DNA of 64,000 nt from positions 62,001 through 126,000 of IMG/VR virus record IMGVR_UViG_3300040801_004532; one strand, written 5' to 3'. Below, piece by piece: positions 10,988 through 62,426 of this stretch (position 1 is the stretch's first letter; every line of letters begins with the position of its first letter). The position numbers and the translations under genes were made by a program. The notes under the pieces are model-generated. The model saw only the letters and a list, made by a program, of their open reading frames with translations. It was not told the origin of the DNA and did no database searches.

Positions 10988-11084
10988 GGGAGTGTAGCTC
11001 AATTAGGTAGAGCAGCCGACTTATGATCGGTATTTGCGCCGGATTAGCGCGAGGTTCGGGGTTCGATTCCCTGCACTCCTACCA
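10988..11084 (+). tRNA. tRNA-Ile(UAU) with long variable arm (97 nt)
   Basis: GGGAGTG/CACTCCT, GCCGA-CT-TAT-GA-TCGGT, extra GCGC-CGGATTA-GCGC hairpin, A-CCA. Confidence 0.8.
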
Positions 11085-12521: not shown

Positions 12522-13166
12522 ATGATATGTGAATGGTGTAAAGAAGAACATGATGGTAACTATGGGTCAGGAAGATTCTGTTCTAAATCTTGTTCAAAAA
12601 AATATGCTTCAAATATTAATTCCAAACAAAAAGGAATAAAAATATCTAAAGCAATGAAAAATAGATGGAAAAATGGTGGTCATATCCAAGATAGAAAAAA
12701 ATTAAAATTAATGATTAAAAAAGCAGCTAAGATTAAAAAGTTAAGAAGACAGACCTTACTAGAACATGGGGAATGGAAAGATTTGCCCTTAACTCTTAAG
12801 AAAAAAAGAGTATTAAAAGAGCAAAATGGCAAATGCTCAATATGTGGTATAAAAAGTTGGAATGAGAAACCTTTAATTTTACACTTCGATCATATAGATG
12901 GAAACAACAAAAACATTGACAGAAAAAATGTAAGATTTATTTGCCCAAATTGTCACAGTCAGACAGAAACTTACTGTGGAAACAAACAGAAATTACCACA
13001 ATTTGAGTATCTTAAAACCACAAAAGAAAATTTAAAGCTCCGTAGCTCAATAGGTTCAGAGCGCAGGACCGATAATCCTGAGGTTGTGGGTTCAATTCCC
13101 TCCGGAGCTACCACAAAATTCTTAAAGGAGTTTTTATGCCTGAGAATTACGAAGAATGTGAAATAA
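12522..13166 (+). CDS. HNH homing endonuclease (free-standing)
   Basis: CSICG...LHFDHIDGNNKN...RFICPNCHSQT; reading frame runs through tRNA-Ile(GAU). Confidence 0.85.
   Translation: MICEWCKEEHDGNYGSGRFCSKSCSKKYASNINSKQKGIKISKAMKNRWKNGGHIQDRKKLKLMIKKAAKIKKLRRQTLLEHGEWKDLPLTLKKKRVLKEQNGKCSICGIKSWNEKPLILHFDHIDGNNKNIDRKNVRFICPNCHSQTETYCGNKQKLPQFEYLKTTKENLKLRSSIGSERRTDNPEVVGSIPSGATTKFLKEFLCLRITKNVK
13036..13113 (+). tRNA. tRNA-Ile(GAU)
   Basis: AGCTCCG/CGGAGCT, CAGGA-CC-GAT-AA-TCCTG (C33), ACCA. Confidence 0.9.
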
Positions 13167-13334: not shown

Positions 13335-13418
13335 GCGGACGTTGGAGAGTCTGGTACTCCATCAGCCTTCCAAGCTGACGCGCAAGCATCGCGGGTTCGA
13401 ATCCCGCCGTCCGCTCCA
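13335..13418 (+). tRNA. tRNA-Gly(UCC), extended variable loop
   Basis: TCAGC-CT-TCC-AA-GCTGA, 12-nt variable region, U73-CCA. Confidence 0.9.
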
Positions 13419-30116: not shown

Positions 30117-30153
30117 AAATATGAGCTTGGGTTCTCCAATGCTCATATTTTTT
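30117..30153 (+). terminator. intrinsic (possibly bidirectional) terminator
   Basis: AAATATGAGC...GCTCATATTT hairpin plus T-run between convergent genes. Confidence 0.6.
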
Positions 30154-31159
30154 GCCACTCTTTATAATTTTCATTATTTATATTGTCAAAAGACAATTTA
30201 TTATAACATGAAAATAATGCTGCAGTTCTCAATCTATCATAATAATCCAACCCCCACTTTATTTTTTTGTCTACATTATTTTCAGTTACATTTATTACAC
30301 ACTCTTCATCCTTAAAATATTTCAATAGTCTAACTGTATCTCTTAATATTAAGGGCGTTCCTGACCGTAAAATTTCTGTAGAAACCCGCGGACATCCATC
30401 TTTCAAATTACTAAAATTCAAACCCAATTTACTTTTGTTTAAAACAATATTTAGTTCAGGACGAGATAGGGGACCAAGGAAATCAATATTTGAAAGGTTA
30501 TATTTTTTTGCCAACTTTTTCCCTATTTCTGGCTTGTTTCCACAATGAGCAATTCTCAAATTTTTTAAGTCAGTTTTGGAAACAATACTCATAAATTTCT
30601 CTTGCCCTTTATATTTAATTTGAGTAAAATTGCATGGCCAGCAAATATCATAGACCTTTTCTAATGGAAGGGGTTTGAAGATTTTTGGTGATGCAGTTTT
30701 ATAGAATGGAATAGTTGAGTAACCTGATTTTATATCTCTTTCATCTTCAATAAGTACATGATCATATTTCCCGCCGTACTGCGGATATTGTCGAATTCCA
30801 GCACCCAAGTATAATTTCATACCAAAATGATTCGGATTCATTTTAGTTACTTGATCATATTCTTTGAATCCACCTCTCCAAAATGAAACGTCAGGGGATG
30901 GATAATCTAAGGTTTCTCTAAAGTTACAAACCCATCGCTGGATATACTTTTTACCATTTACATCAAAAACAATATCCTCTTTTTTATCTTTAGTTAATCT
31001 CCAAATTATAATTTCATTTGCTAAATTATTGTTTAATAGCCAAAGAGACAATAACATATAATAATCATGACAATTATCTTCAAATGATTTTAGGTCTTTA
31101 TATTTATGATAATATTCAAGTGGTATTAAATTACTTCTGAACAACCAAAAACTTTGCAT
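30143..31159 (-). CDS. glycosyltransferase (GT-B, family 1/4-like)
   Basis: FLGPLSRPEL...S.LGL..SN..DGCPRV..E...SGTP. Confidence 0.65.
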   Translation of the reverse strand: MQSFWLFRSNLIPLEYYHKYKDLKSFEDNCHDYYMLLSLWLLNNNLANEIIIWRLTKDKKEDIVFDVNGKKYIQRWVCNFRETLDYPSPDVSFWRGGFKEYDQVTKMNPNHFGMKLYLGAGIRQYPQYGGKYDHVLIEDERDIKSGYSTIPFYKTASPKIFKPLPLEKVYDICWPCNFTQIKYKGQEKFMSIVSKTDLKNLRIAHCGNKPEIGKKLAKKYNLSNIDFLGPLSRPELNIVLNKSKLGLNFSNLKDGCPRVSTEILRSGTPLILRDTVRLLKYFKDEECVINVTENNVDKKIKWGLDYYDRLRTAALFSCYNKLSFDNINNENYKEWQKI

Positions 31160-35492: not shown

Positions 35493-36167
35493 TTACTTAT
35501 CATATTTGACTCCATCAATTTCGTTAAGAATATCAAAAACACAATCTAAATCAAAATCAAAATTTAGTTTTTGTTCTTTTTTATATGCAAATGCTCGACT
35601 AGGATCAATCTTCTGATATTTTCTATTTTTTATTGTTCTCATTTTTTTGCGAAAATTAATATCTGGCTTTAGTCCACAATGCTTATAAATTTTAAATAGC
35701 ATATCATCAGGGTTTATTAACAAATCTTCATATTTAAATGTATATGTGTTATTCATCTTCATTATTTTCTTTGTAGCAACTGGAACAATCCCTTTATAGG
35801 TTCTTATTGGCTGTTCTAAATTTTTAATATATTTAAATTTATTTACATTTGAAACAGCAACATCATATGGATGCCTGATAATATGCAAGATTCGACTTTT
35901 ACTATTAAAAAATTTATTCCACTTTTCACAATATTTGATTATTGGAAATTTCCTTGCAGAAGGAAAATAGGGAACTTTTTCTCCCCAATTATCTTTGGTA
36001 ACATCAATGCCACGATTTTCAACAAATTGAATAAGGGTCTGCTTATCCTTGCAAATTTTCAAAAGAAAGTTTTCATGATAAATCCTTCTAACTTGTGGGT
36101 GTAATTGTAGCAATCGTCGAAGAAGAGTCGTTCCGCTCCTTTGGAAACCAACAACTAAAATATTCAT
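35493..36167 (-). CDS. sulfotransferase family protein
   Basis: VVGFQRSGTTLLRRLL..HP, WGEK.P, HIIRHPYD..VS, KYEDL. Confidence 0.85.
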   Translation of the reverse strand: MNILVVGFQRSGTTLLRRLLQLHPQVRRIYHENFLLKICKDKQTLIQFVENRGIDVTKDNWGEKVPYFPSARKFPIIKYCEKWNKFFNSKSRILHIIRHPYDVAVSNVNKFKYIKNLEQPIRTYKGIVPVATKKIMKMNNTYTFKYEDLLINPDDMLFKIYKHCGLKPDINFRKKMRTIKNRKYQKIDPSRAFAYKKEQKLNFDFDLDCVFDILNEIDGVKYDK

Positions 36168-37215
36168 TAATAACCCCCACCATCCGCCTAGCAGATTGTC
36201 CATCATTCAACATACGAAGTTGATCTGGATAATTGCTTTTGGGAGGATTCTCTAATAAATTTATTACAGATGAAAATATCTTATCGCTATCAGGTTGACA
36301 TAATCTAGTTGTACCATAATTAATCGTATATTCAATATTTGAAGTATCCCTAATTGCAACGCAGGGAACGTCCAAAATAGAAGTTTCTTGTTGAACCCCA
36401 TCAGAATCTGTTATAACACAGGATGCATTTTTCATTAACTTAATAAAATCAAAATATCCAAGAGGGTCTAAAACATCAATCATTCCTGTGTGTTTCCATA
36501 ATCCAAATTCATCAATCATCTTACTTGTTCTTGGGTGAACAGTAAATACAACATGATGTTTTTCAGACAGTTTCGATAGCCCGATTATAATCTCTTCTAA
36601 GTTATCTTTTATATCTGTATTCACAGGTCTATGTATTTCAACTAATAAAAATAGGTCGTCATCATAAATTGGAGTCCGTTCAGTATAAAATAAAAGATTA
36701 TCAATCATTGGATCTCCAACAAGGTGAATCTTTTTTGAATCAATCCCCTCATTTAATAAGTTCCTTCTATCTTGTGGAGAAATTGGAAACAACAAGTCTG
36801 ACACATGATCTGTTACAATTCGATTTATTTCTTCGGGCATTTTTTTATCAAAAGATCTCATTCCAGCTTCCTGGTGGGCAATTGGTATGTGTAATTTAGC
36901 TGCAACAAGAGCACAACCCATAGTTGAATTTACATCACCAACAACCAGAACCATATCAGGTCTTTCATCAAGACAAACTTTCTCAAATCGATCCATTATC
37001 TTTGCAGTTTGTTCACCATGATTTCCGGAACCAACTTCTAAGTGTTTGTATGGCTCTTTTAAACCAAACTCTTTAAAAAACACTTCGTTCATATTGTAGT
37101 CATAATGCTGCCCAGTATGGATAATTTCATACTCAAAATCTCGTAAAATAAGCTCTCGCTCAATCGCAGCTATTTTCATAAAGTTCGGTCTTGCTCCGCC
37201 AATCAAGTAAATCAT
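36088..37215 (-). CDS. wecB: UDP-N-acetylglucosamine 2-epimerase (WecB/WbpI-like)
   Basis: GARPNFMK, HTGQHYD, VGDVNST, HQEAGMRS, EEINR, TDSDGVQQE. Confidence 0.9.
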   Translation of the reverse strand: MIYLIGGARPNFMKIAAIERELILRDFEYEIIHTGQHYDYNMNEVFFKEFGLKEPYKHLEVGSGNHGEQTAKIMDRFEKVCLDERPDMVLVVGDVNSTMGCALVAAKLHIPIAHQEAGMRSFDKKMPEEINRIVTDHVSDLLFPISPQDRRNLLNEGIDSKKIHLVGDPMIDNLLFYTERTPIYDDDLFLLVEIHRPVNTDIKDNLEEIIIGLSKLSEKHHVVFTVHPRTSKMIDEFGLWKHTGMIDVLDPLGYFDFIKLMKNASCVITDSDGVQQETSILDVPCVAIRDTSNIEYTINYGTTRLCQPDSDKIFSSVINLLENPPKSNYPDQLRMLNDGQSARRMVGVINEYFSCWFPKERNDSSSTIATITPTS

Positions 37216-46978: not shown

Positions 46979-47812
46979 TTACCAGTCCCTGATAACAGCC
47001 CTATCATCTTTAATTTTATTATAAAACTCCTCAAACTTCATGCTCGCCAATCTTTTTTCAGCGTCTTCAAATTTGATTAGATTATCTAATTTTTTATCAT
47101 TCTTTTGTCTAGTCAAAACATTACATACAGATCCAGCATGTTTTCCACAATGGTATCTTAGATTAGTACTTAATCCAAGGATGTAATGTTTCCCCTTTGA
47201 TGATTGGTCTAATAGTTTCCAATACATCTGGTCATGTTTTTTATCATGCCCAACCAATTGTTTTAAATTAAGAAACCCAACATCACGAAAAAAATCTGGT
47301 CTAACAGACCAAAATCCCGACCCTCCCAACTTCCCTGTTTTTCCCGATAACTCAGTACTTATTTGAATTGCTGGTTCGTTTCGATATTTAATTCCGCCTG
47401 GCACTTGCCCAATAACCTTAATATGATTTAGTTTGTTTTTGTGAATATATTTCCAAGCAGATAAGAGCTTCTTATCCCATTCTGGCGCAACAATTATATC
47501 ATTGTCCAACATAAGCAAAAAAGCATATGAGTCTTTCTTCGGATCCTGTTCATGTTGCAAACCAAAAAAATTACAAGTTGATGCTTTACTAAACGCACCA
47601 AATGTAGAATCAGTTGAAGTAAATGTAATCTGTGAGATTAACCCTTTAGAATATAACTTATGAAAATATGCAAAATGATCTTCTAATAGATGATTTGTTT
47701 GGTTATCGTAAACGTAAATTTTATGCGGCAACGATGAATGAACCTTTAAGGCATGGATACACTTCCTGGTGATTTCTAAACGATTTCTAACGCTTAAGAA
47801 AATTTTAACCAT
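46979..47812 (-). CDS. glycosyltransferase family 2
   Basis: VRNRL.IT..C, YVYDN, LMLDND. Confidence 0.75.
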   Translation of the reverse strand: MVKIFLSVRNRLEITRKCIHALKVHSSLPHKIYVYDNQTNHLLEDHFAYFHKLYSKGLISQITFTSTDSTFGAFSKASTCNFFGLQHEQDPKKDSYAFLLMLDNDIIVAPEWDKKLLSAWKYIHKNKLNHIKVIGQVPGGIKYRNEPAIQISTELSGKTGKLGGSGFWSVRPDFFRDVGFLNLKQLVGHDKKHDQMYWKLLDQSSKGKHYILGLSTNLRYHCGKHAGSVCNVLTRQKNDKKLDNLIKFEDAEKRLASMKFEEFYNKIKDDRAVIRDW

Positions 47813-49076
47813 CCTTAGATAACTCCTCAATATTATCAATAGTTTCTTTTATATTAATTTGGTCATAACATGGGCTGTATCCATCAGGACCTGCTTCTGG
47901 ACATGGAGTATGCCCATGAATAAAACATGGAACACAATGTCTTTGAGCATCAACCCAACGAGCTTTTGGGTAAGTTTTTAATCTGATATGACCAGGAAAT
48001 GGTCCGTATATTCCATAACACGGAACATCAAGAGATGCGGCAATATGATTTAGAGCAGAGTCGGTTGCAATCACACATTTAGCAAGTGAAGCAACAGCAA
48101 TTGAAAAATCTAGAGATAATGAATGTTGACAAAAATTAAACACTCGATGTTTATTTTTAACTGCTGAAATAAAATTATCAACATTATCTTTTTGCCTGGG
48201 GTTATCTGTGATAAGAACATCATGACCACGATCAGTAAGTTCATCAATTATGTTAATCCAAAATTCAGGACGAGGGGTTCTAATGGGAGAACTGGCTCTA
48301 AGTTGAGTTAACATAAACCCTTTTGGTTGTACGCCCCACTCTTGTAATTTCTCAAGACAAAATTCAACTTTATCATCTTTTGGTTTTTGTGATGGAACCA
48401 ATTTATCATTGGGTAAATCAAGTCCTAACCATTCACTAAATAAATTGTATGCATTTACCTGTTCTGCTAATTTACATCTTTCAATAACTCCCTCAAACAA
48501 TGCATGATAATCAGCTCTATTCAACTCAGTCAAATTAAACGGCAAATCCACAACGCGATCAACACATTCCCAAGTTTCAACCATTGATTGGTATTGCGGA
48601 CCACAACAAAAATTAATAGTACATGAAGGATATTTTTCTTTTAGATAGGATAAATTCGGTTGGATAAACAAAAGGTCTCCGATACCTCCTGTTCTAAATA
48701 CAAGGAGTGTTTTGTTTGTTAAATCCTGCCCGATATACGGAGTATATAAATTTTTGAATTGAACTTTGGCTGGCTTTAAAAATTTTCTGCCTCCTCTTGG
48801 TTCCCGATGTAGTTGTTGATAAACACCAAGACCCATAACATAATTATTGCCCTTCTTTAATTTCTGCTTTTTAAAAAAATTCTGAATAAATGATAAATTT
48901 TTAACCGCATGAGCAATAACAATATTCGGTGGCGAGTTTCGTAATTCTTTTAGATCGCTAACAATTTTAGTGGATTCGCCTACCAAACCCAACTCTCTCA
49001 ATTGCATACTTGTTATCTGTCTAAATTCTCTTGTTGGTACTTCGGACTCCCATTTTATCCCCGTATTCAAATCCAT
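47805..49076 (-). CDS. glycosyltransferase family 9 (heptosyltransferase-like)
   Basis: RTGGIGDLL, IATDSALNHIAA, GIYGPF, C.PC...C. Confidence 0.8.
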   Translation of the reverse strand: MDLNTGIKWESEVPTREFRQITSMQLRELGLVGESTKIVSDLKELRNSPPNIVIAHAVKNLSFIQNFFKKQKLKKGNNYVMGLGVYQQLHREPRGGRKFLKPAKVQFKNLYTPYIGQDLTNKTLLVFRTGGIGDLLFIQPNLSYLKEKYPSCTINFCCGPQYQSMVETWECVDRVVDLPFNLTELNRADYHALFEGVIERCKLAEQVNAYNLFSEWLGLDLPNDKLVPSQKPKDDKVEFCLEKLQEWGVQPKGFMLTQLRASSPIRTPRPEFWINIIDELTDRGHDVLITDNPRQKDNVDNFISAVKNKHRVFNFCQHSLSLDFSIAVASLAKCVIATDSALNHIAASLDVPCYGIYGPFPGHIRLKTYPKARWVDAQRHCVPCFIHGHTPCPEAGPDGYSPCYDQINIKETIDNIEELSKDG

Positions 49077-50036: not shown

Positions 50037-51086
50037 TTATTTGCCCATCCCTTTAACGTCTGCAATAGTGCGAATTAAAAGACCATTTGCAACCGTTGTT
50101 AATGGATTTTTAGCACGTCTAATCTCTGAAACCTCAAATGGCAACTCGTGTGTTGAAATGACATTTTTAAACAACTCAACAAAACCCTCTGGAATACTTG
50201 TCCCGCCAGAAACAACAATTGGAATCTTATCATCTATTTCAATATCAACTTTTTCATCAAACTCTTTGATAATTCGTTTTACAGTATAGTCAATCAGGGC
50301 TTTATGATAATAGAAAAGAGCTTCCAAAACCCTCTTAGTTTTCTTATTTTTAACTTCAACATCACCAGATAATTTCATATATTTCTCTTTCAAATTTGTA
50401 ACCCTATTTGGAACCATTGCTAAATCTGCCGCAACCTGTTGATCAATCCAATCGCCAGCTCGAGCGGTTGAGAATTTTAATGCTTCAACGCCCTTATATG
50501 AAATTGCTATATTGGCCATACCAGCACCAAAGCTAATTCCAATCCCACTAAAGTTCTCTTTGGCACATTCAGAATAAATAATCGCCATCGCCTCATTGAC
50601 AGATGTATGATTAACACCCAAACGATTAAGAATTCTTGCAAAAACATTTTCATGATATGTAACAGAACGTCCCTCGTCAATCGCTTCAGCGGGTACCGAA
50701 TACGAACAATAAACCTCTTTATCTTTGGTCTCTCCAATTAGTTCCTTTAGCATCAATGTCAAAACATCAATTGCAGCAATTTCTTTTGGAGAGATAAGTC
50801 CTTTTTCCATAGGTCGAGAAATACTTGTGCCAAAAATATTCGCAAACTCAAATGCGTCAGAACCAATAATAAATAACTCTCCATCATCGCTTTCAACATA
50901 ACTAATATTACTTAGTTGGTTGAGCGAGACATCATCCTTCTCTACTTTAAGAAATACATTCCTTGTAATATTAACATCATCTGAGTCAGAACTTGCACAT
51001 ACCAGATGCATTGTTCCGACATCAAGCCCCAAACATTTAACTTTACTATGTTTTTTCATTTCTTTGTTATTGTTTTCTTCGTTCAT
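50037..51086 (-). CDS. actin-like ATPase (MreB/ParM/MamK superfamily)
   Basis: LGLDVGT (phosphate 1), NEAMA, ISFGAGM (phosphate 2), VVSGGTS (adenosine). Confidence 0.8.
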   Translation of the reverse strand: MNEENNNKEMKKHSKVKCLGLDVGTMHLVCASSDSDDVNITRNVFLKVEKDDVSLNQLSNISYVESDDGELFIIGSDAFEFANIFGTSISRPMEKGLISPKEIAAIDVLTLMLKELIGETKDKEVYCSYSVPAEAIDEGRSVTYHENVFARILNRLGVNHTSVNEAMAIIYSECAKENFSGIGISFGAGMANIAISYKGVEALKFSTARAGDWIDQQVAADLAMVPNRVTNLKEKYMKLSGDVEVKNKKTKRVLEALFYYHKALIDYTVKRIIKEFDEKVDIEIDDKIPIVVSGGTSIPEGFVELFKNVISTHELPFEVSEIRRAKNPLTTVANGLLIRTIADVKGMGK

Positions 51087-59425: not shown

Positions 59426-60641
59426 TGAAATCATTGCTGATCTATTGACCAGCGGGTATCAGACACTGCCATGGGCACCAAGGAAAACATTCACTAGGGT
59501 AATCGGTGGGTATGCTGGAACCGGTAAAACCACAACAATTTCAGAATTAAGAAAGGCAATTTATCAAAGAATGCCGAAGGTAGATGTTGCAATTGCAACC
59601 CTAACTGGAAAGGCTGCATCTGTTCTGAAATTGAAGCTTGGTGCCTATGGCTCGTTGTTTACACAAGATTATCTTGGAACTATTCATGGACTTATATATA
59701 GTCCAGAAACTGTATGGGATAAAAAATTAAAAACATTTGTCATTGTTGGGTGGAAAAGAAAACCCAAAGATCAAATGGTTGCTGACCTTATTATAATTGA
59801 TGAAGCATCTATGGTTGGAACCGATATATGGAATGATCTTAAATCATATGATAAAACAATAATTGCCGTTGGTGATCATGGGCAATTGCCACCTGTATCA
59901 GAATCACAATTTAATCTTCTATCTAACCCTCATTATATGCTAACAGAAATACACCGTCAAGCATTAAATTCCCCAATAATTAAACTCTCTAAATTTGTTA
60001 GAGAAGAAGGATATATTCCTTTTGGTTTCCTATCAAAAGATGTTTTTAAACTTAGATGGAAGGGTGATCTTTGTCAAAAAATATGGAAAAATAAATTGAA
60101 ATTTGACGAAGATGATATGACCGTCCTTTGTGCTTTTAATACAACAAGAGCCAATTTAAATGACTCGATTCGGAGACATTTAAAATATAAAGAAAAGGTG
60201 CCTTATCCAGGAGAGAAGATAGTTTGTCTTGTAAACAATCATCATCAAAAAATAATGAATGGGCAAGTAGGAAAAGTTTTATGGTTGATGCCCGAGCAGG
60301 ATGGTTTATATCGTGTCACCTTAGAAATTGATGGTGAGATCTATGAAGTGATGATAGCTGAAAAATGTTTTGGAGAAGTACAATATACAATGTATGACAA
60401 AACATCAAAACTAACAAAAATGAAAGATTATGCATTTGATCAAGGATTTCCAACTATTGGGTTTTTTGATTACGGATATTGTATATCAGTTCATAAATCA
60501 CAAGGGTCTGAATGGGATAAGGTTGTAGTTATAGAACAGAGGACAAAAAGGTGGGATGACGAATATTATAAAAGATGGTTATATACAGCGATAACAAGAG
60601 CAAGAGAAAAACTTTTCATCATTGGGGATTTTTGGGGTTAA
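59391..60641 (+). CDS. Dda/RecD-like SF1 helicase
   Basis: GYAGTGKTT, IIDEASM, GDHGQLPPV, HRQA, YCISVHKSQGSEW, LYTAITRA; TTG start after GGAGAGG. Confidence 0.9.
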   Translation: MNLNKEQQKIVDEIIADLLTSGYQTLPWAPRKTFTRVIGGYAGTGKTTTISELRKAIYQRMPKVDVAIATLTGKAASVLKLKLGAYGSLFTQDYLGTIHGLIYSPETVWDKKLKTFVIVGWKRKPKDQMVADLIIIDEASMVGTDIWNDLKSYDKTIIAVGDHGQLPPVSESQFNLLSNPHYMLTEIHRQALNSPIIKLSKFVREEGYIPFGFLSKDVFKLRWKGDLCQKIWKNKLKFDEDDMTVLCAFNTTRANLNDSIRRHLKYKEKVPYPGEKIVCLVNNHHQKIMNGQVGKVLWLMPEQDGLYRVTLEIDGEIYEVMIAEKCFGEVQYTMYDKTSKLTKMKDYAFDQGFPTIGFFDYGYCISVHKSQGSEWDKVVVIEQRTKRWDDEYYKRWLYTAITRAREKLFIIGDFWG

Positions 60642-61442: not shown

Positions 61443-62426
61443 ATGACTGAATTGGTTGACTCTTTATGGATTGAAAAGTATCGTCCTCGTAAATTAGAGG
61501 AGTTGGTTTTACCTGAAAGCTATAGAGGGGATTTTGCTAAGATAATTTCAACAGGTTCATTACCAAACCTTTTATTTTCTGGTCCTCCTGGTGGTGGCAA
61601 AACAACATTAGCCAGAGTTCTATGTTCTAAAAATGGAGTTTTATTTAATAAACATGACAATCTCCTTTCTGCAAATGGTTCGGCAAAAAGGACAAGGGGT
61701 ATTGATTATGTGGATAAAGTAATTGAACCTTTTCTAAAACATCCGCCAGCAGGCGATAAATATAAGGTTGTGTTTATTGATGAAGCAGATAAATTAACAA
61801 CAGATGGATTTGACTCGCTTAGAGCTATAATCGAAAAATATCACGTAGCATATGGGCGATTTATTTTTACTTGTAATTATATTTCAAAAATACCAGATCC
61901 TGTTCAGAGTAGGTTCATTCCTTATACCTTTTCACAAATTCCAAAAGATTTTATTTTGAAATATTGTAAGTGGATTCTTGATAGTGAAGAGATCGATTAT
62001 CACGAAGATAATATTAAGTTGGCGATTTCAAATTTATATCCTGATGTAAGAAAAATAGTCAATGCCCTACAACGAGCTTCTTGGGGTGGGAAATTAGACA
62101 TCAAAGAGTCTGATGTTATATCAAATGAAAAACGAATAATTTCTTTCATTCTTGAAATTATTAGCAATATTGAAAAAGGGCAAGACAAAAAACTTGGTGG
62201 GATTGTAAATTCAATTGTTGAAATTGTTTCAACATTAGATCTTGAATATAGGAATATTTATACTGAGTTATTCTTTTCAACAATACCTGCTCCAGCAAAA
62301 ATTGTTATAAATAAATATTCAAACGGTCATCAAAATTGTCTTGTTCCACATATGCATTTTATGGCGATGGTATTTGATATTATCAAAGCATTGCAAGGAT
62401 ATAGAAAAGCTTTAATGGGAAAGTAA
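61443..62426 (+). CDS. sliding clamp loader AAA+ subunit (RFC-S/T4 gp44-like)
   Basis: LWIEKYRP, LLFSGPPGGGKTT, IDEADKL, FIFTCN..SKI...QSR. Confidence 0.92.
   Translation: MTELVDSLWIEKYRPRKLEELVLPESYRGDFAKIISTGSLPNLLFSGPPGGGKTTLARVLCSKNGVLFNKHDNLLSANGSAKRTRGIDYVDKVIEPFLKHPPAGDKYKVVFIDEADKLTTDGFDSLRAIIEKYHVAYGRFIFTCNYISKIPDPVQSRFIPYTFSQIPKDFILKYCKWILDSEEIDYHEDNIKLAISNLYPDVRKIVNALQRASWGGKLDIKESDVISNEKRIISFILEIISNIEKGQDKKLGGIVNSIVEIVSTLDLEYRNIYTELFFSTIPAPAKIVINKYSNGHQNCLVPHMHFMAMVFDIIKALQGYRKALMGK

Follow-up and report, generated by a model that had tools for sequence, protein, structure and literature searches.

Transfer RNAs that combine the anticodon UAU with either an ordinary body or a long extra arm have been described in several settings. 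Bacterial tRNA-Ile(UAU) ('Ile3') of Mycoplasma mobile, Bifidobacterium and Neorickettsia reads AUA without lysidine, and these are ordinary 76-77-nt class-I tRNAs in cells that have lost TilS; in M. mobile it is the synthetase that adapted (Arg865) (PMC3575796; tRNAscan-SE 2.0 paper). The nematode-specific nev-tRNA-Ile(UAU) is a class II tRNA with a long variable arm, as in tRNA-Leu and tRNA-Ser, and is charged with Leu in vitro (PMC3333845, PMC4300185). Bacterial allo-tRNAs, for which UAU is a predominant anticodon, also have a long extra arm, occur in bacteria and phages, have an 8/4 or 9/3 acceptor/T-stem configuration and carry SerRS identity features (PMC5389517, PMC7609411). In canonical class II tRNAs (Leu, Ser, Tyr) a helical arm lies between the anticodon arm and the T arm, and archaeal LeuRS (Haloferax and Pyrococcus) reads bases at the tip of this arm, a precedent for a class Ia synthetase reading specific bases in a variable-arm loop (reference 55 cited in PMC9976931). 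Lastly, engineered tRNAs tagged with an aptamer show that a foreign hairpin carried on a tRNA chassis that already has a long variable arm is tolerated in translation (PMC7590224). Here we describe a phage tRNA gene with anticodon UAU that carries a second hairpin of anticodon-arm format, holding the ordinary isoleucine triplet GAU, and that belongs to a large family of relatives.

A UAU tRNA with two hairpins in an ATA-rich phage

The stretch analysed (the window, 64,000 nt) covers positions 62,001 to 126,000 of the 248,136-bp virus record IMGVR_UViG_3300040801_004532, which has 35% G+C, is estimated to be 79% complete, and carries 29 tRNAs and a tmRNA, so that the host is bacterial. ARAGORN finds 18 tRNA genes and a tmRNA in the first 21 kb of the window, one of which is a tRNA(UAU) at exactly 10988-11084 (+). 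The Rfam model RF00005 matches 10988-11081 at 60.5 bits, against a gathering score of 29 (E 3.5e-13), and treats about 21 nt as an insertion in the variable region. The MFE fold recovers the extra hairpin and extends it to 7 bp with U.G/U-A pairs. The parts, read directly from the sequence, are as follows:

10988..11084 (+), tRNA(UAU) gene of 97 nt, with an acceptor stem at 10988-10994 and 11074-11080, a G1.U72 wobble at its top (G.U at 1:72 also occurs in 39 of 111 family members), discriminator A73 at 11081 and an encoded CCA at 11082-11084
10997..11013 (+), D arm of class-I type, with a 4-bp stem GCUC/GAGC and a 9-nt loop with A14, A15, G18 and G19
11015..11031 (+), hairpin 1, the decoding anticodon arm, with stem GCCGA/UCGGU, loop CUUAUGA at 11020-11026, anticodon UAU at 11022-11024, U33, and G37, which makes t6A37 impossible
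11032..11034 (+), 3-nt linker AUU between the two hairpins (0-5 nt in relatives)
11035..11051 (+), hairpin 2, the extra arm in 5+7+5 format, with stem UGCGC/GCGCG and loop CGGAUUA at 11040-11046, GAU being at 11042-11044
11052..11056 (+), class-I type 5-nt variable loop AGGUU, with G46 and U48
11057..11073 (+), T arm, with a 5-bp stem containing one G.U pair and loop UUCGAUU
13036..13113 (+), a separate class-I tRNA-Ile(GAU) of the same phage

An earlier note on this DNA, made from the sequence alone, had described a tRNA with anticodon TAT and an extra hairpin of about 20 nt before the usual AGGTT, and what it described is correct in every detail. Its term 'long variable arm' nevertheless understates the feature. 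The variable region, of 25 nt with a 5-bp hairpin, does satisfy the length criterion of class II tRNAs (more than 10 nt forming a helix), but the core does not: the D stem is the 4-bp GCUC/GAGC, the arm has a 7-nt loop, and an intact AGGUU with G46 and U48 follows the insertion. The phage's own Leu and Ser tRNAs look different, with a different D arm, a short arm capped by a 4-5-nt loop and, in Ser, G73. Deleting either hairpin would leave a perfectly ordinary class-I tRNA, and this is therefore not a class II variable arm.

The note's description of the phage as ATA-rich also holds. In 291 ORFs of the record, ATA is found at 22.6 per 1000 codons and makes up 28% of Ile codons; coding density did not improve when TAG or TGA was read as sense, and code 11 was therefore kept throughout. 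We aligned three conserved window proteins (UDP-GlcNAc 2-epimerase, a RecD-like helicase and a volactin-like protein) with their homologues. At the 26 ATA positions, the homologues have Ile 60%, Val 14%, Leu 8% and Ser 1%, which is indistinguishable from ATT/ATC columns (p=0.16) and very different from Leu codon columns (p about 1e-9 to 3e-10) and Val codon columns (p about 1e-5). The homologues were themselves translated with the standard code, which makes this test partly circular, but the phage nonetheless places ATA where Ile is required. A search with the PP-loop profile PF01171 detected no TilS-type domain in the 79%-complete record, and the phage has its own separate tRNA-Ile(GAU), which fits AUA decoding that does not depend on lysidine. 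The profile PF09179 found nothing in the two bacterial genomes that carry the tRNA, although in a control it detected its target in only 3 of 14 reference genomes.

Conservation of the extra hairpin and a parallel in amber suppressors

BLAST against cultured phages found the same over-long tRNA(UAU) in Synechococcus phages SynMITS9220M01, where it is annotated simply as 'tRNA-Ile', and DSL-LC02, and it later turned up in Aeromonas phage 1233. The SynMITS9220M01 copy lies at 146660-146754 of accession MT408532, and that of Aeromonas phage 1233 is in accession OR359403. Pattern scans that fixed only the D arm, the UUAU of the anticodon loop and the T loop, leaving the variable region free, returned many more from viral contigs, from prokaryotic genomes and MAGs, where the gene sits inside dense phage-like tRNA arrays (for example, 18 tRNAs in 4 kb of the Clostridiales bacterium CCNA10 chromosome), and from metagenomes. 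After removal of duplicates, there are at least 111 distinct long-arm sequences, which fall into 31 clusters at 85% identity measured outside the extra arm. The same scans also found at least 19 distinct class-I tRNA(UAU) genes without the arm, so the arm is not obligatory.

In a MAFFT alignment of the 111 sequences, 95.4% of cells form standard pairs and the covariation score is 0.657, against 0.174 in shuffles (0 of 500 shuffles reach it) and about 0.12 for slid registers. Every variable helix shows changes on both sides: the acceptor stem (7 of 7 pairs), hairpin 1 (5 of 5), hairpin 2 (all five pairs, the four inner ones being well paired) and the T stem. The outermost pair of hairpin 2 forms in only 19 sequences, the window copy among them. 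This comparative structure was preferred to full-length MFE folds, which mis-fold hairpin 1 in some relatives. The layout is constant, with two consecutive hairpins of 5+7+5 nt separated by 0-5 nt and followed by a class-I type variable loop, which is AGGUU in 55 and CGGUU in 30 of 111; U48 is invariant and G46 nearly so. An encoded CCA is present in 59 of 111 and A73 in 107 of 111. By inspection, we saw no conserved complementarity between the loops of the two hairpins, or between the extra loop and the D or T loops; AUA occurs only in the GAUAA variants.

Although the scans did not constrain the extra loop, its positions 34' and 35' (loop positions 3-4) are G and A in 111 of 111 sequences and 31 of 31 clusters. 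Position 32' is C in 102 and U in 9, 33' is A in 84, G in 21, U in 5 and C in 1, 36' is U in 95 and C in 16, 37' can be any of the four bases but is usually a pyrimidine, and 38' is A in 90 and G in 19. The loop therefore carries GAU, the standard Ile anticodon, where an anticodon would sit, or, in four clusters and a few sporadic members, GAC, an example of the latter being the copy at locus L073 (4898-4990). In 17% of sequences 32' and 38' can pair, making a pentaloop. Since 33' is rarely the U that decoding loops need, this loop is unlikely to decode. Hairpin 1, in contrast, has U33 in every member and always a purine at position 37 (A 98 and G 13 of 111; A 105 and G 13 in a count of 118). 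The window phage, and 48 of 99 carrier loci with five or more tRNAs, also encode a separate class-I tRNA-Ile(GAU), showing that the GAU of hairpin 2 is not needed to read AUY. The positions that serve IleRS as loop determinants are relaxed in hairpin 1, with A38 in only 49 of 118 and G37 in 13, the window copy included, whereas A37 and A38 are present in 49 of 50 phage tRNA-Ile(GAU). Of the E. coli IleRS stem determinants (U12-A23, C29-G41, C4-G69), the window copy has U12-A23 and C29-G41, together with A73, but its 4:69 pair is A-U; pair 29:41 of hairpin 1 varies across the family, while the equivalent C-G pair of hairpin 2 is kept in 105 of 111. Comparison of the tRNA without its anticodon arm to 898 class-I tRNAs from the loci retrieved gave no isotype signal, the top hits being Pro, Lys, Met, Asn, Ala and Ile at similar scores.

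The arm is strongly associated with UAU. A scan for the GAUUA loop plus T arm, with the anticodon left free, returned 27 UAU tRNAs and one ordinary tRNA-Ile(GAU), and of 143 distinct long-arm tRNAs with this D arm, whatever the anticodon, 137 are UAU. Among the six exceptions is an amber suppressor at locus L244 (7130-7224), with anticodon CUA, G73 and a weak 1:72 pair, which has the same two-hairpin architecture and an extra loop reading CUCUGAA, the anticodon loop of tRNA-Gln(CUG). A further scan for suppressors with a Gln-type D arm, again leaving the extra arm unconstrained, found a second at locus L433 (6785-6872), with extra loop CCCUGAA, and a third at locus L344 (3000-3090) also has CUCUGAA in its arm, but in a scan that required the motif. 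This parallel rests on these three sequences only. In both systems the retained triplet is one base away from the decoding one (GAU and UAU, CUG and CUA), and both cognate synthetases, IleRS and GlnRS, depend strongly on the anticodon. Other over-long phage tRNAs with ordinary anticodons (Lys, Asn, Trp, Met, Thr, Gly, Arg), examined as a control, carry mostly short arms, most of them capped by 4-nt loops such as GCAA, GUAA and GAAA, and none has a 7-nt loop with a triplet one base from its own anticodon.

Possible roles of the second hairpin

These observations suggest that the gene encodes a functional phage tRNA that very likely reads AUA through hairpin 1, is likely to be charged with isoleucine, and would supplement the host's scarce lysidine-dependent tRNA-Ile2 in an ATA-rich phage. 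The earlier note's interpretation, either TilS-independent AUA decoding or a Leu-type-charged tRNA that mistranslates AUA, is thus supported in part: the first alternative is the likely function, and the second is not supported. The tRNA probably arose by tandem duplication of the anticodon arm of a tRNA-Ile(GAU), followed by a G34-to-U change in the 5' copy. We tentatively propose that the 3' copy, which no longer looks able to decode, presents G34'-A35'-Y36' to the host IleRS, which recognises U34 poorly, so that one arm would serve the ribosome and the other the synthetase; we consider this last role somewhat less likely than not. The gene, its fold, the conservation and covariation across the family, the invariant G-A, the link with UAU, the parallel in amber suppressors and the placement of ATA at Ile positions are established by our analysis, while expression, charging with isoleucine and the role of hairpin 2 as a synthetase handle are inferences from sequence. 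A search for sequencing runs holding this DNA returned only sediment and mat DNA metagenomes with partial matches, and no RNA runs.

Published work is compatible with this proposal. E. coli IleRS has a 360-fold lower kcat/Km for UAU than for the lysidine anticodon LAU, and the discriminating Trp is conserved in bacteria that have tilS (PMC3575796), so that a phage tRNA(UAU) has a charging problem to solve. In the S. aureus IleRS-tRNA structure, the anticodon-binding domain makes base-specific contacts only with A35, not with C32, U33 or U36, and the C-terminal domain reads base 34 (PMC11685878). Invariant G34' and A35', a free 33' and either pyrimidine at 36' is the pattern expected if bacterial IleRS reads this loop. 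The geometry is the weak point of the model, since class I synthetases approach tRNA with the variable region facing solvent, and a hairpin in the variable position is not where the anticodon-binding domain sits unless the junction rearranges. Either hairpin 2 takes the canonical anticodon-arm position, stacked under the D stem, during charging, which would fit its exact 5+7+5 format and the canonical variable loop that follows, or the flexible C-terminal domain of IleRS reaches it, for which archaeal LeuRS offers a precedent. A strict mimic of the Ile anticodon is further weakened by the 16 GAC sequences, GAC being the Val anticodon and U36 counting as an IleRS determinant in E. coli biochemistry, by the usual pyrimidine at 37', which excludes t6A37, a strong determinant for bacterial-type IleRS, and by the pentaloop variants.

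It is possible, though short of an even chance, that phages use a general trick to change what a tRNA decodes without losing its amino-acid identity, by duplicating the anticodon arm, mutating one copy for the ribosome (GAU to UAU for AUA, CUG to CUA for the amber codon) and keeping the other as the handle read by the anticodon-dependent synthetase (IleRS, GlnRS). This would be a natural tRNA with physically separate decoding and identity anticodons. Anticodon-reading synthetases normally tie the codon specificity of a tRNA to its amino acid, a main barrier to codon reassignment and to the engineering of new decoders. An architecture separating the two functions would explain how phages supply AUA readers to TilS-dependent hosts, how Gln-type amber suppressors stay chargeable in recoded phages, and how IleRS and GlnRS engage tRNA, and would offer a ready design for synthetic biology. 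Even if the handle idea fails, this is a widespread tRNA class with an invariant G-A loop motif, present in cultured cyanophages and an Aeromonas phage, that annotation pipelines label simply as 'tRNA-Ile'.

The most serious rival, which remains possible, is that the tRNA is an ordinary Ile-charged AUA reader whose extra hairpin serves something other than synthetase recognition: recruiting or blocking an enzyme that modifies U34, thereby limiting AUG misreading, protecting from or decoying host tRNA-targeting nucleases, marking phage tRNAs for a phage factor, or stabilizing the fold by tertiary docking. In all of these the invariant G-A would be the contact, and its conservation shows a sequence-specific function without saying with what. 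The GAC, pyrimidine 37' and pentaloop variants fit a generic G-A at a hairpin tip better than a strict Ile anticodon mimic, and many phage tRNAs carry extra mini-arms of unknown role. Unmodified UAU also reads AUG on E. coli ribosomes (PMC3575796), so a fidelity device would be useful. In addition, 20 of 50 phage tRNA-Ile(GAU) genes in these loci, including that of the window, have C33 instead of the near-universal U33, which hints at pressure on Ile anticodon loops from some host factor. However, this view explains neither why the retained triplet is the cognate anticodon one base away from the decoding one in two unrelated systems, nor why the arm keeps the exact 5+7+5 format followed by a canonical 5-nt variable loop, and no candidate partner was identified.

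Charging by LeuRS or SerRS, the note's second alternative, with AUA mistranslated or recoded as with nev-tRNA or allo-tRNA(UAU), is very unlikely. In its favour, long-armed UAU tRNAs with such properties exist in nature (PMC3333845, PMC5389517), and A73, together with A15-U48 and G18G19, elements used by E. coli LeuRS (PMC9976931), is present. A15-U48 and A73 are, however, shared with the phage's own tRNA-Ile(GAU), so they do not mark Leu here, E. coli LeuRS does not use the variable arm at all (PMC9976931), and G73, a serine determinant found in this phage's Ser tRNAs, is lacking. The core is of class-I type, with a 7/5 acceptor/T configuration, the conserved G-A-Y loop has no role in Leu or Ser identity, and insertion of Leu or Ser would damage about 1,670 positions in the 291 ORFs. 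It is equally unlikely that the extra hairpin sets the amino acid by itself, with GAU versions charged by IleRS and GAC versions by ValRS, so that some relatives, though not the window copy, would read AUA as Val. ValRS uses A35, C36 and A73 (PMC9976931), and the U-to-C change occurs in near-identical backgrounds (locus L093 against the window, and L122 against L193), but 14 of 16 GAC loops can close to a pentaloop through a C32'-G38' pair, unlike a Val anticodon loop, bacterial IleRS need not read base 36 directly (PMC11685878), and there is no coding evidence for AUA as Val. A neutral relic, an excised spacer or a pseudogene, for which the lack of RNA data and the existence of armless tRNA(UAU) genes leave slight room, is the least likely, given an intact cloverleaf and a hairpin kept in 31 divergent clusters with compensatory stem changes and an invariant G-A while neighbouring loop positions vary freely.

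Comparison with described tRNAs

We define here 'two-anticodon-arm' phage tRNAs as those with two consecutive 5+7+5 hairpins followed by a class-I variable loop, the 3' loop holding the cognate anticodon one base away from the decoding one; the window copy, with UAU and GAU, fits this definition, and it has the relatives described above as well as amber-suppressor analogues with CUA and CUG. Literature searches found no description of this family or of a tRNA with a second anticodon-like arm, although absence from the collection searched does not prove that it is unpublished; the one paper matching 'second anticodon' concerns the second anticodon position in a mitochondrial tRNA (PMC4223735). 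The tRNA-Ile(UAU) of TilS-less bacteria shares with the window tRNA the UAU anticodon, A73 and a class-I core, but has no extra arm. The phage family occurs in phages whose hosts (Synechococcus, Aeromonas) belong to groups that generally carry tilS, and the adaptation appears to be in the tRNA, as a second hairpin. Class II tRNAs have arms with 3-5-nt loops, lack the 5-nt G46/U48 tail and, in bacteria, have arm loops that are not conserved in sequence. In engineered aptamer-tagged tRNAs the hairpin is synthetic and binds a protein tag and not a synthetase. Nematode nev-tRNA-Ile(UAU) has the same anticodon and a long extra arm, but the phage family is of phage and bacterial origin and combines a class-I body with an anticodon-arm-format hairpin and a conserved GAY triplet. 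Allo-tRNAs share the long arm and a non-standard pairing of anticodon and identity, but the phage family has a 7-bp acceptor and a 5-bp T stem, both covarying, with A73, rather than the 8/4 or 9/3 configuration.

Amber-suppressor tRNAs and the tmRNA

In addition to the window tRNA, extra hairpins are carried by amber-suppressor tRNAs (CUA) in other viral contigs (L244, L433 and L344 below), where the loop of the hairpin holds CUG, the Gln anticodon, in the same position as the GAU hairpin of the window tRNA. The phage itself also encodes an amber-suppressor tRNA, of class I, in a genome where the standard code fits best: TAG ends 37 of 291 ORFs, and reading TAG as sense does not raise coding density. 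A tmRNA gene sits inside the tRNA array.

L244:7130-7224, L433:6785-6872 and L344:3000-3090: amber-suppressor tRNAs (CUA) with CUG in the loop of the extra hairpin
Window 4784-4860 (+): class-I amber-suppressor tRNA, anticodon CUA, labelled 'Pyl' by ARAGORN
Window 6211-6561 (+): phage-encoded tmRNA (Rfam 141 bits) with tag peptide ADDYYTEVALAA

The scan for suppressors also returned, several times per contig in the contigs L432, L435 and L437, repeated tRNA-like elements with a UUCUAGA loop and a normal T arm, but no obvious anticodon stem (for example in L437, on the minus strand, at reverse-complement coordinates 6941-7031).

Tetraloop-capped mini-arms and other genes of the phage

Two further tRNAs of the phage each carry a short extra arm, which in these cases is capped by a GNRA tetraloop (GCAA, GUAA). 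Similar tetraloop-capped mini-arms occur in Lys(CUU), Asn(GUU), Trp(CCA), Thr and Met tRNAs of other phage contigs.

Window 13335-13418 (+): tRNA-Gly(UCC) of 84 nt
Genome 60409-60493 (outside the window): initiator-like tRNA-Met(CAU) of 85 nt, with a U1.U72 mismatch and three G-C pairs in the anticodon stem

Among its protein-coding genes, the phage encodes a volactin-family actin homologue (Pfam 254 bits), a UDP-GlcNAc 2-epimerase (317 bits) and several glycosyltransferases, at the following positions. The volactin gene uses ATA only twice, against 27 ATT codons.

Window 50037-51086 (-), 36088-37215 (-), 30143-31159 (-) and 47805-49076 (-): the volactin-family, epimerase and glycosyltransferase genes

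Departures from the usual tRNA pattern

The class-I tRNA-Ile(GAU) of the phage has C33 (loop CCGAUAA) in place of the near-universal U33, and is not alone in this respect, since C33 is found in 20 of the 50 distinct phage tRNA-Ile(GAU) genes in the fetched loci. It is possible that this is an anticodon-loop change that evades a host factor. The tRNA(UAU) of the window has a G1.U72 wobble at the top of its acceptor stem, which is shared by 39 of 111 family members in the alignment of this family (A2); a weak first pair is unusual for an elongator tRNA. Lastly, a tRNA with the anticodon AAU (Ile) lies elsewhere in the genome, with an A.A mismatch in the acceptor stem and a D stem of 3 bp.

Window 13036-13113 (+): class-I tRNA-Ile(GAU) with C33
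Window 10988 with 11080: G1.U72 wobble of the tRNA(UAU)
Genome 164150-164225 (outside the window): tRNA with anticodon AAU (Ile)

tRNAs with A34, other than Arg(ACG), are unusual in bacteria.
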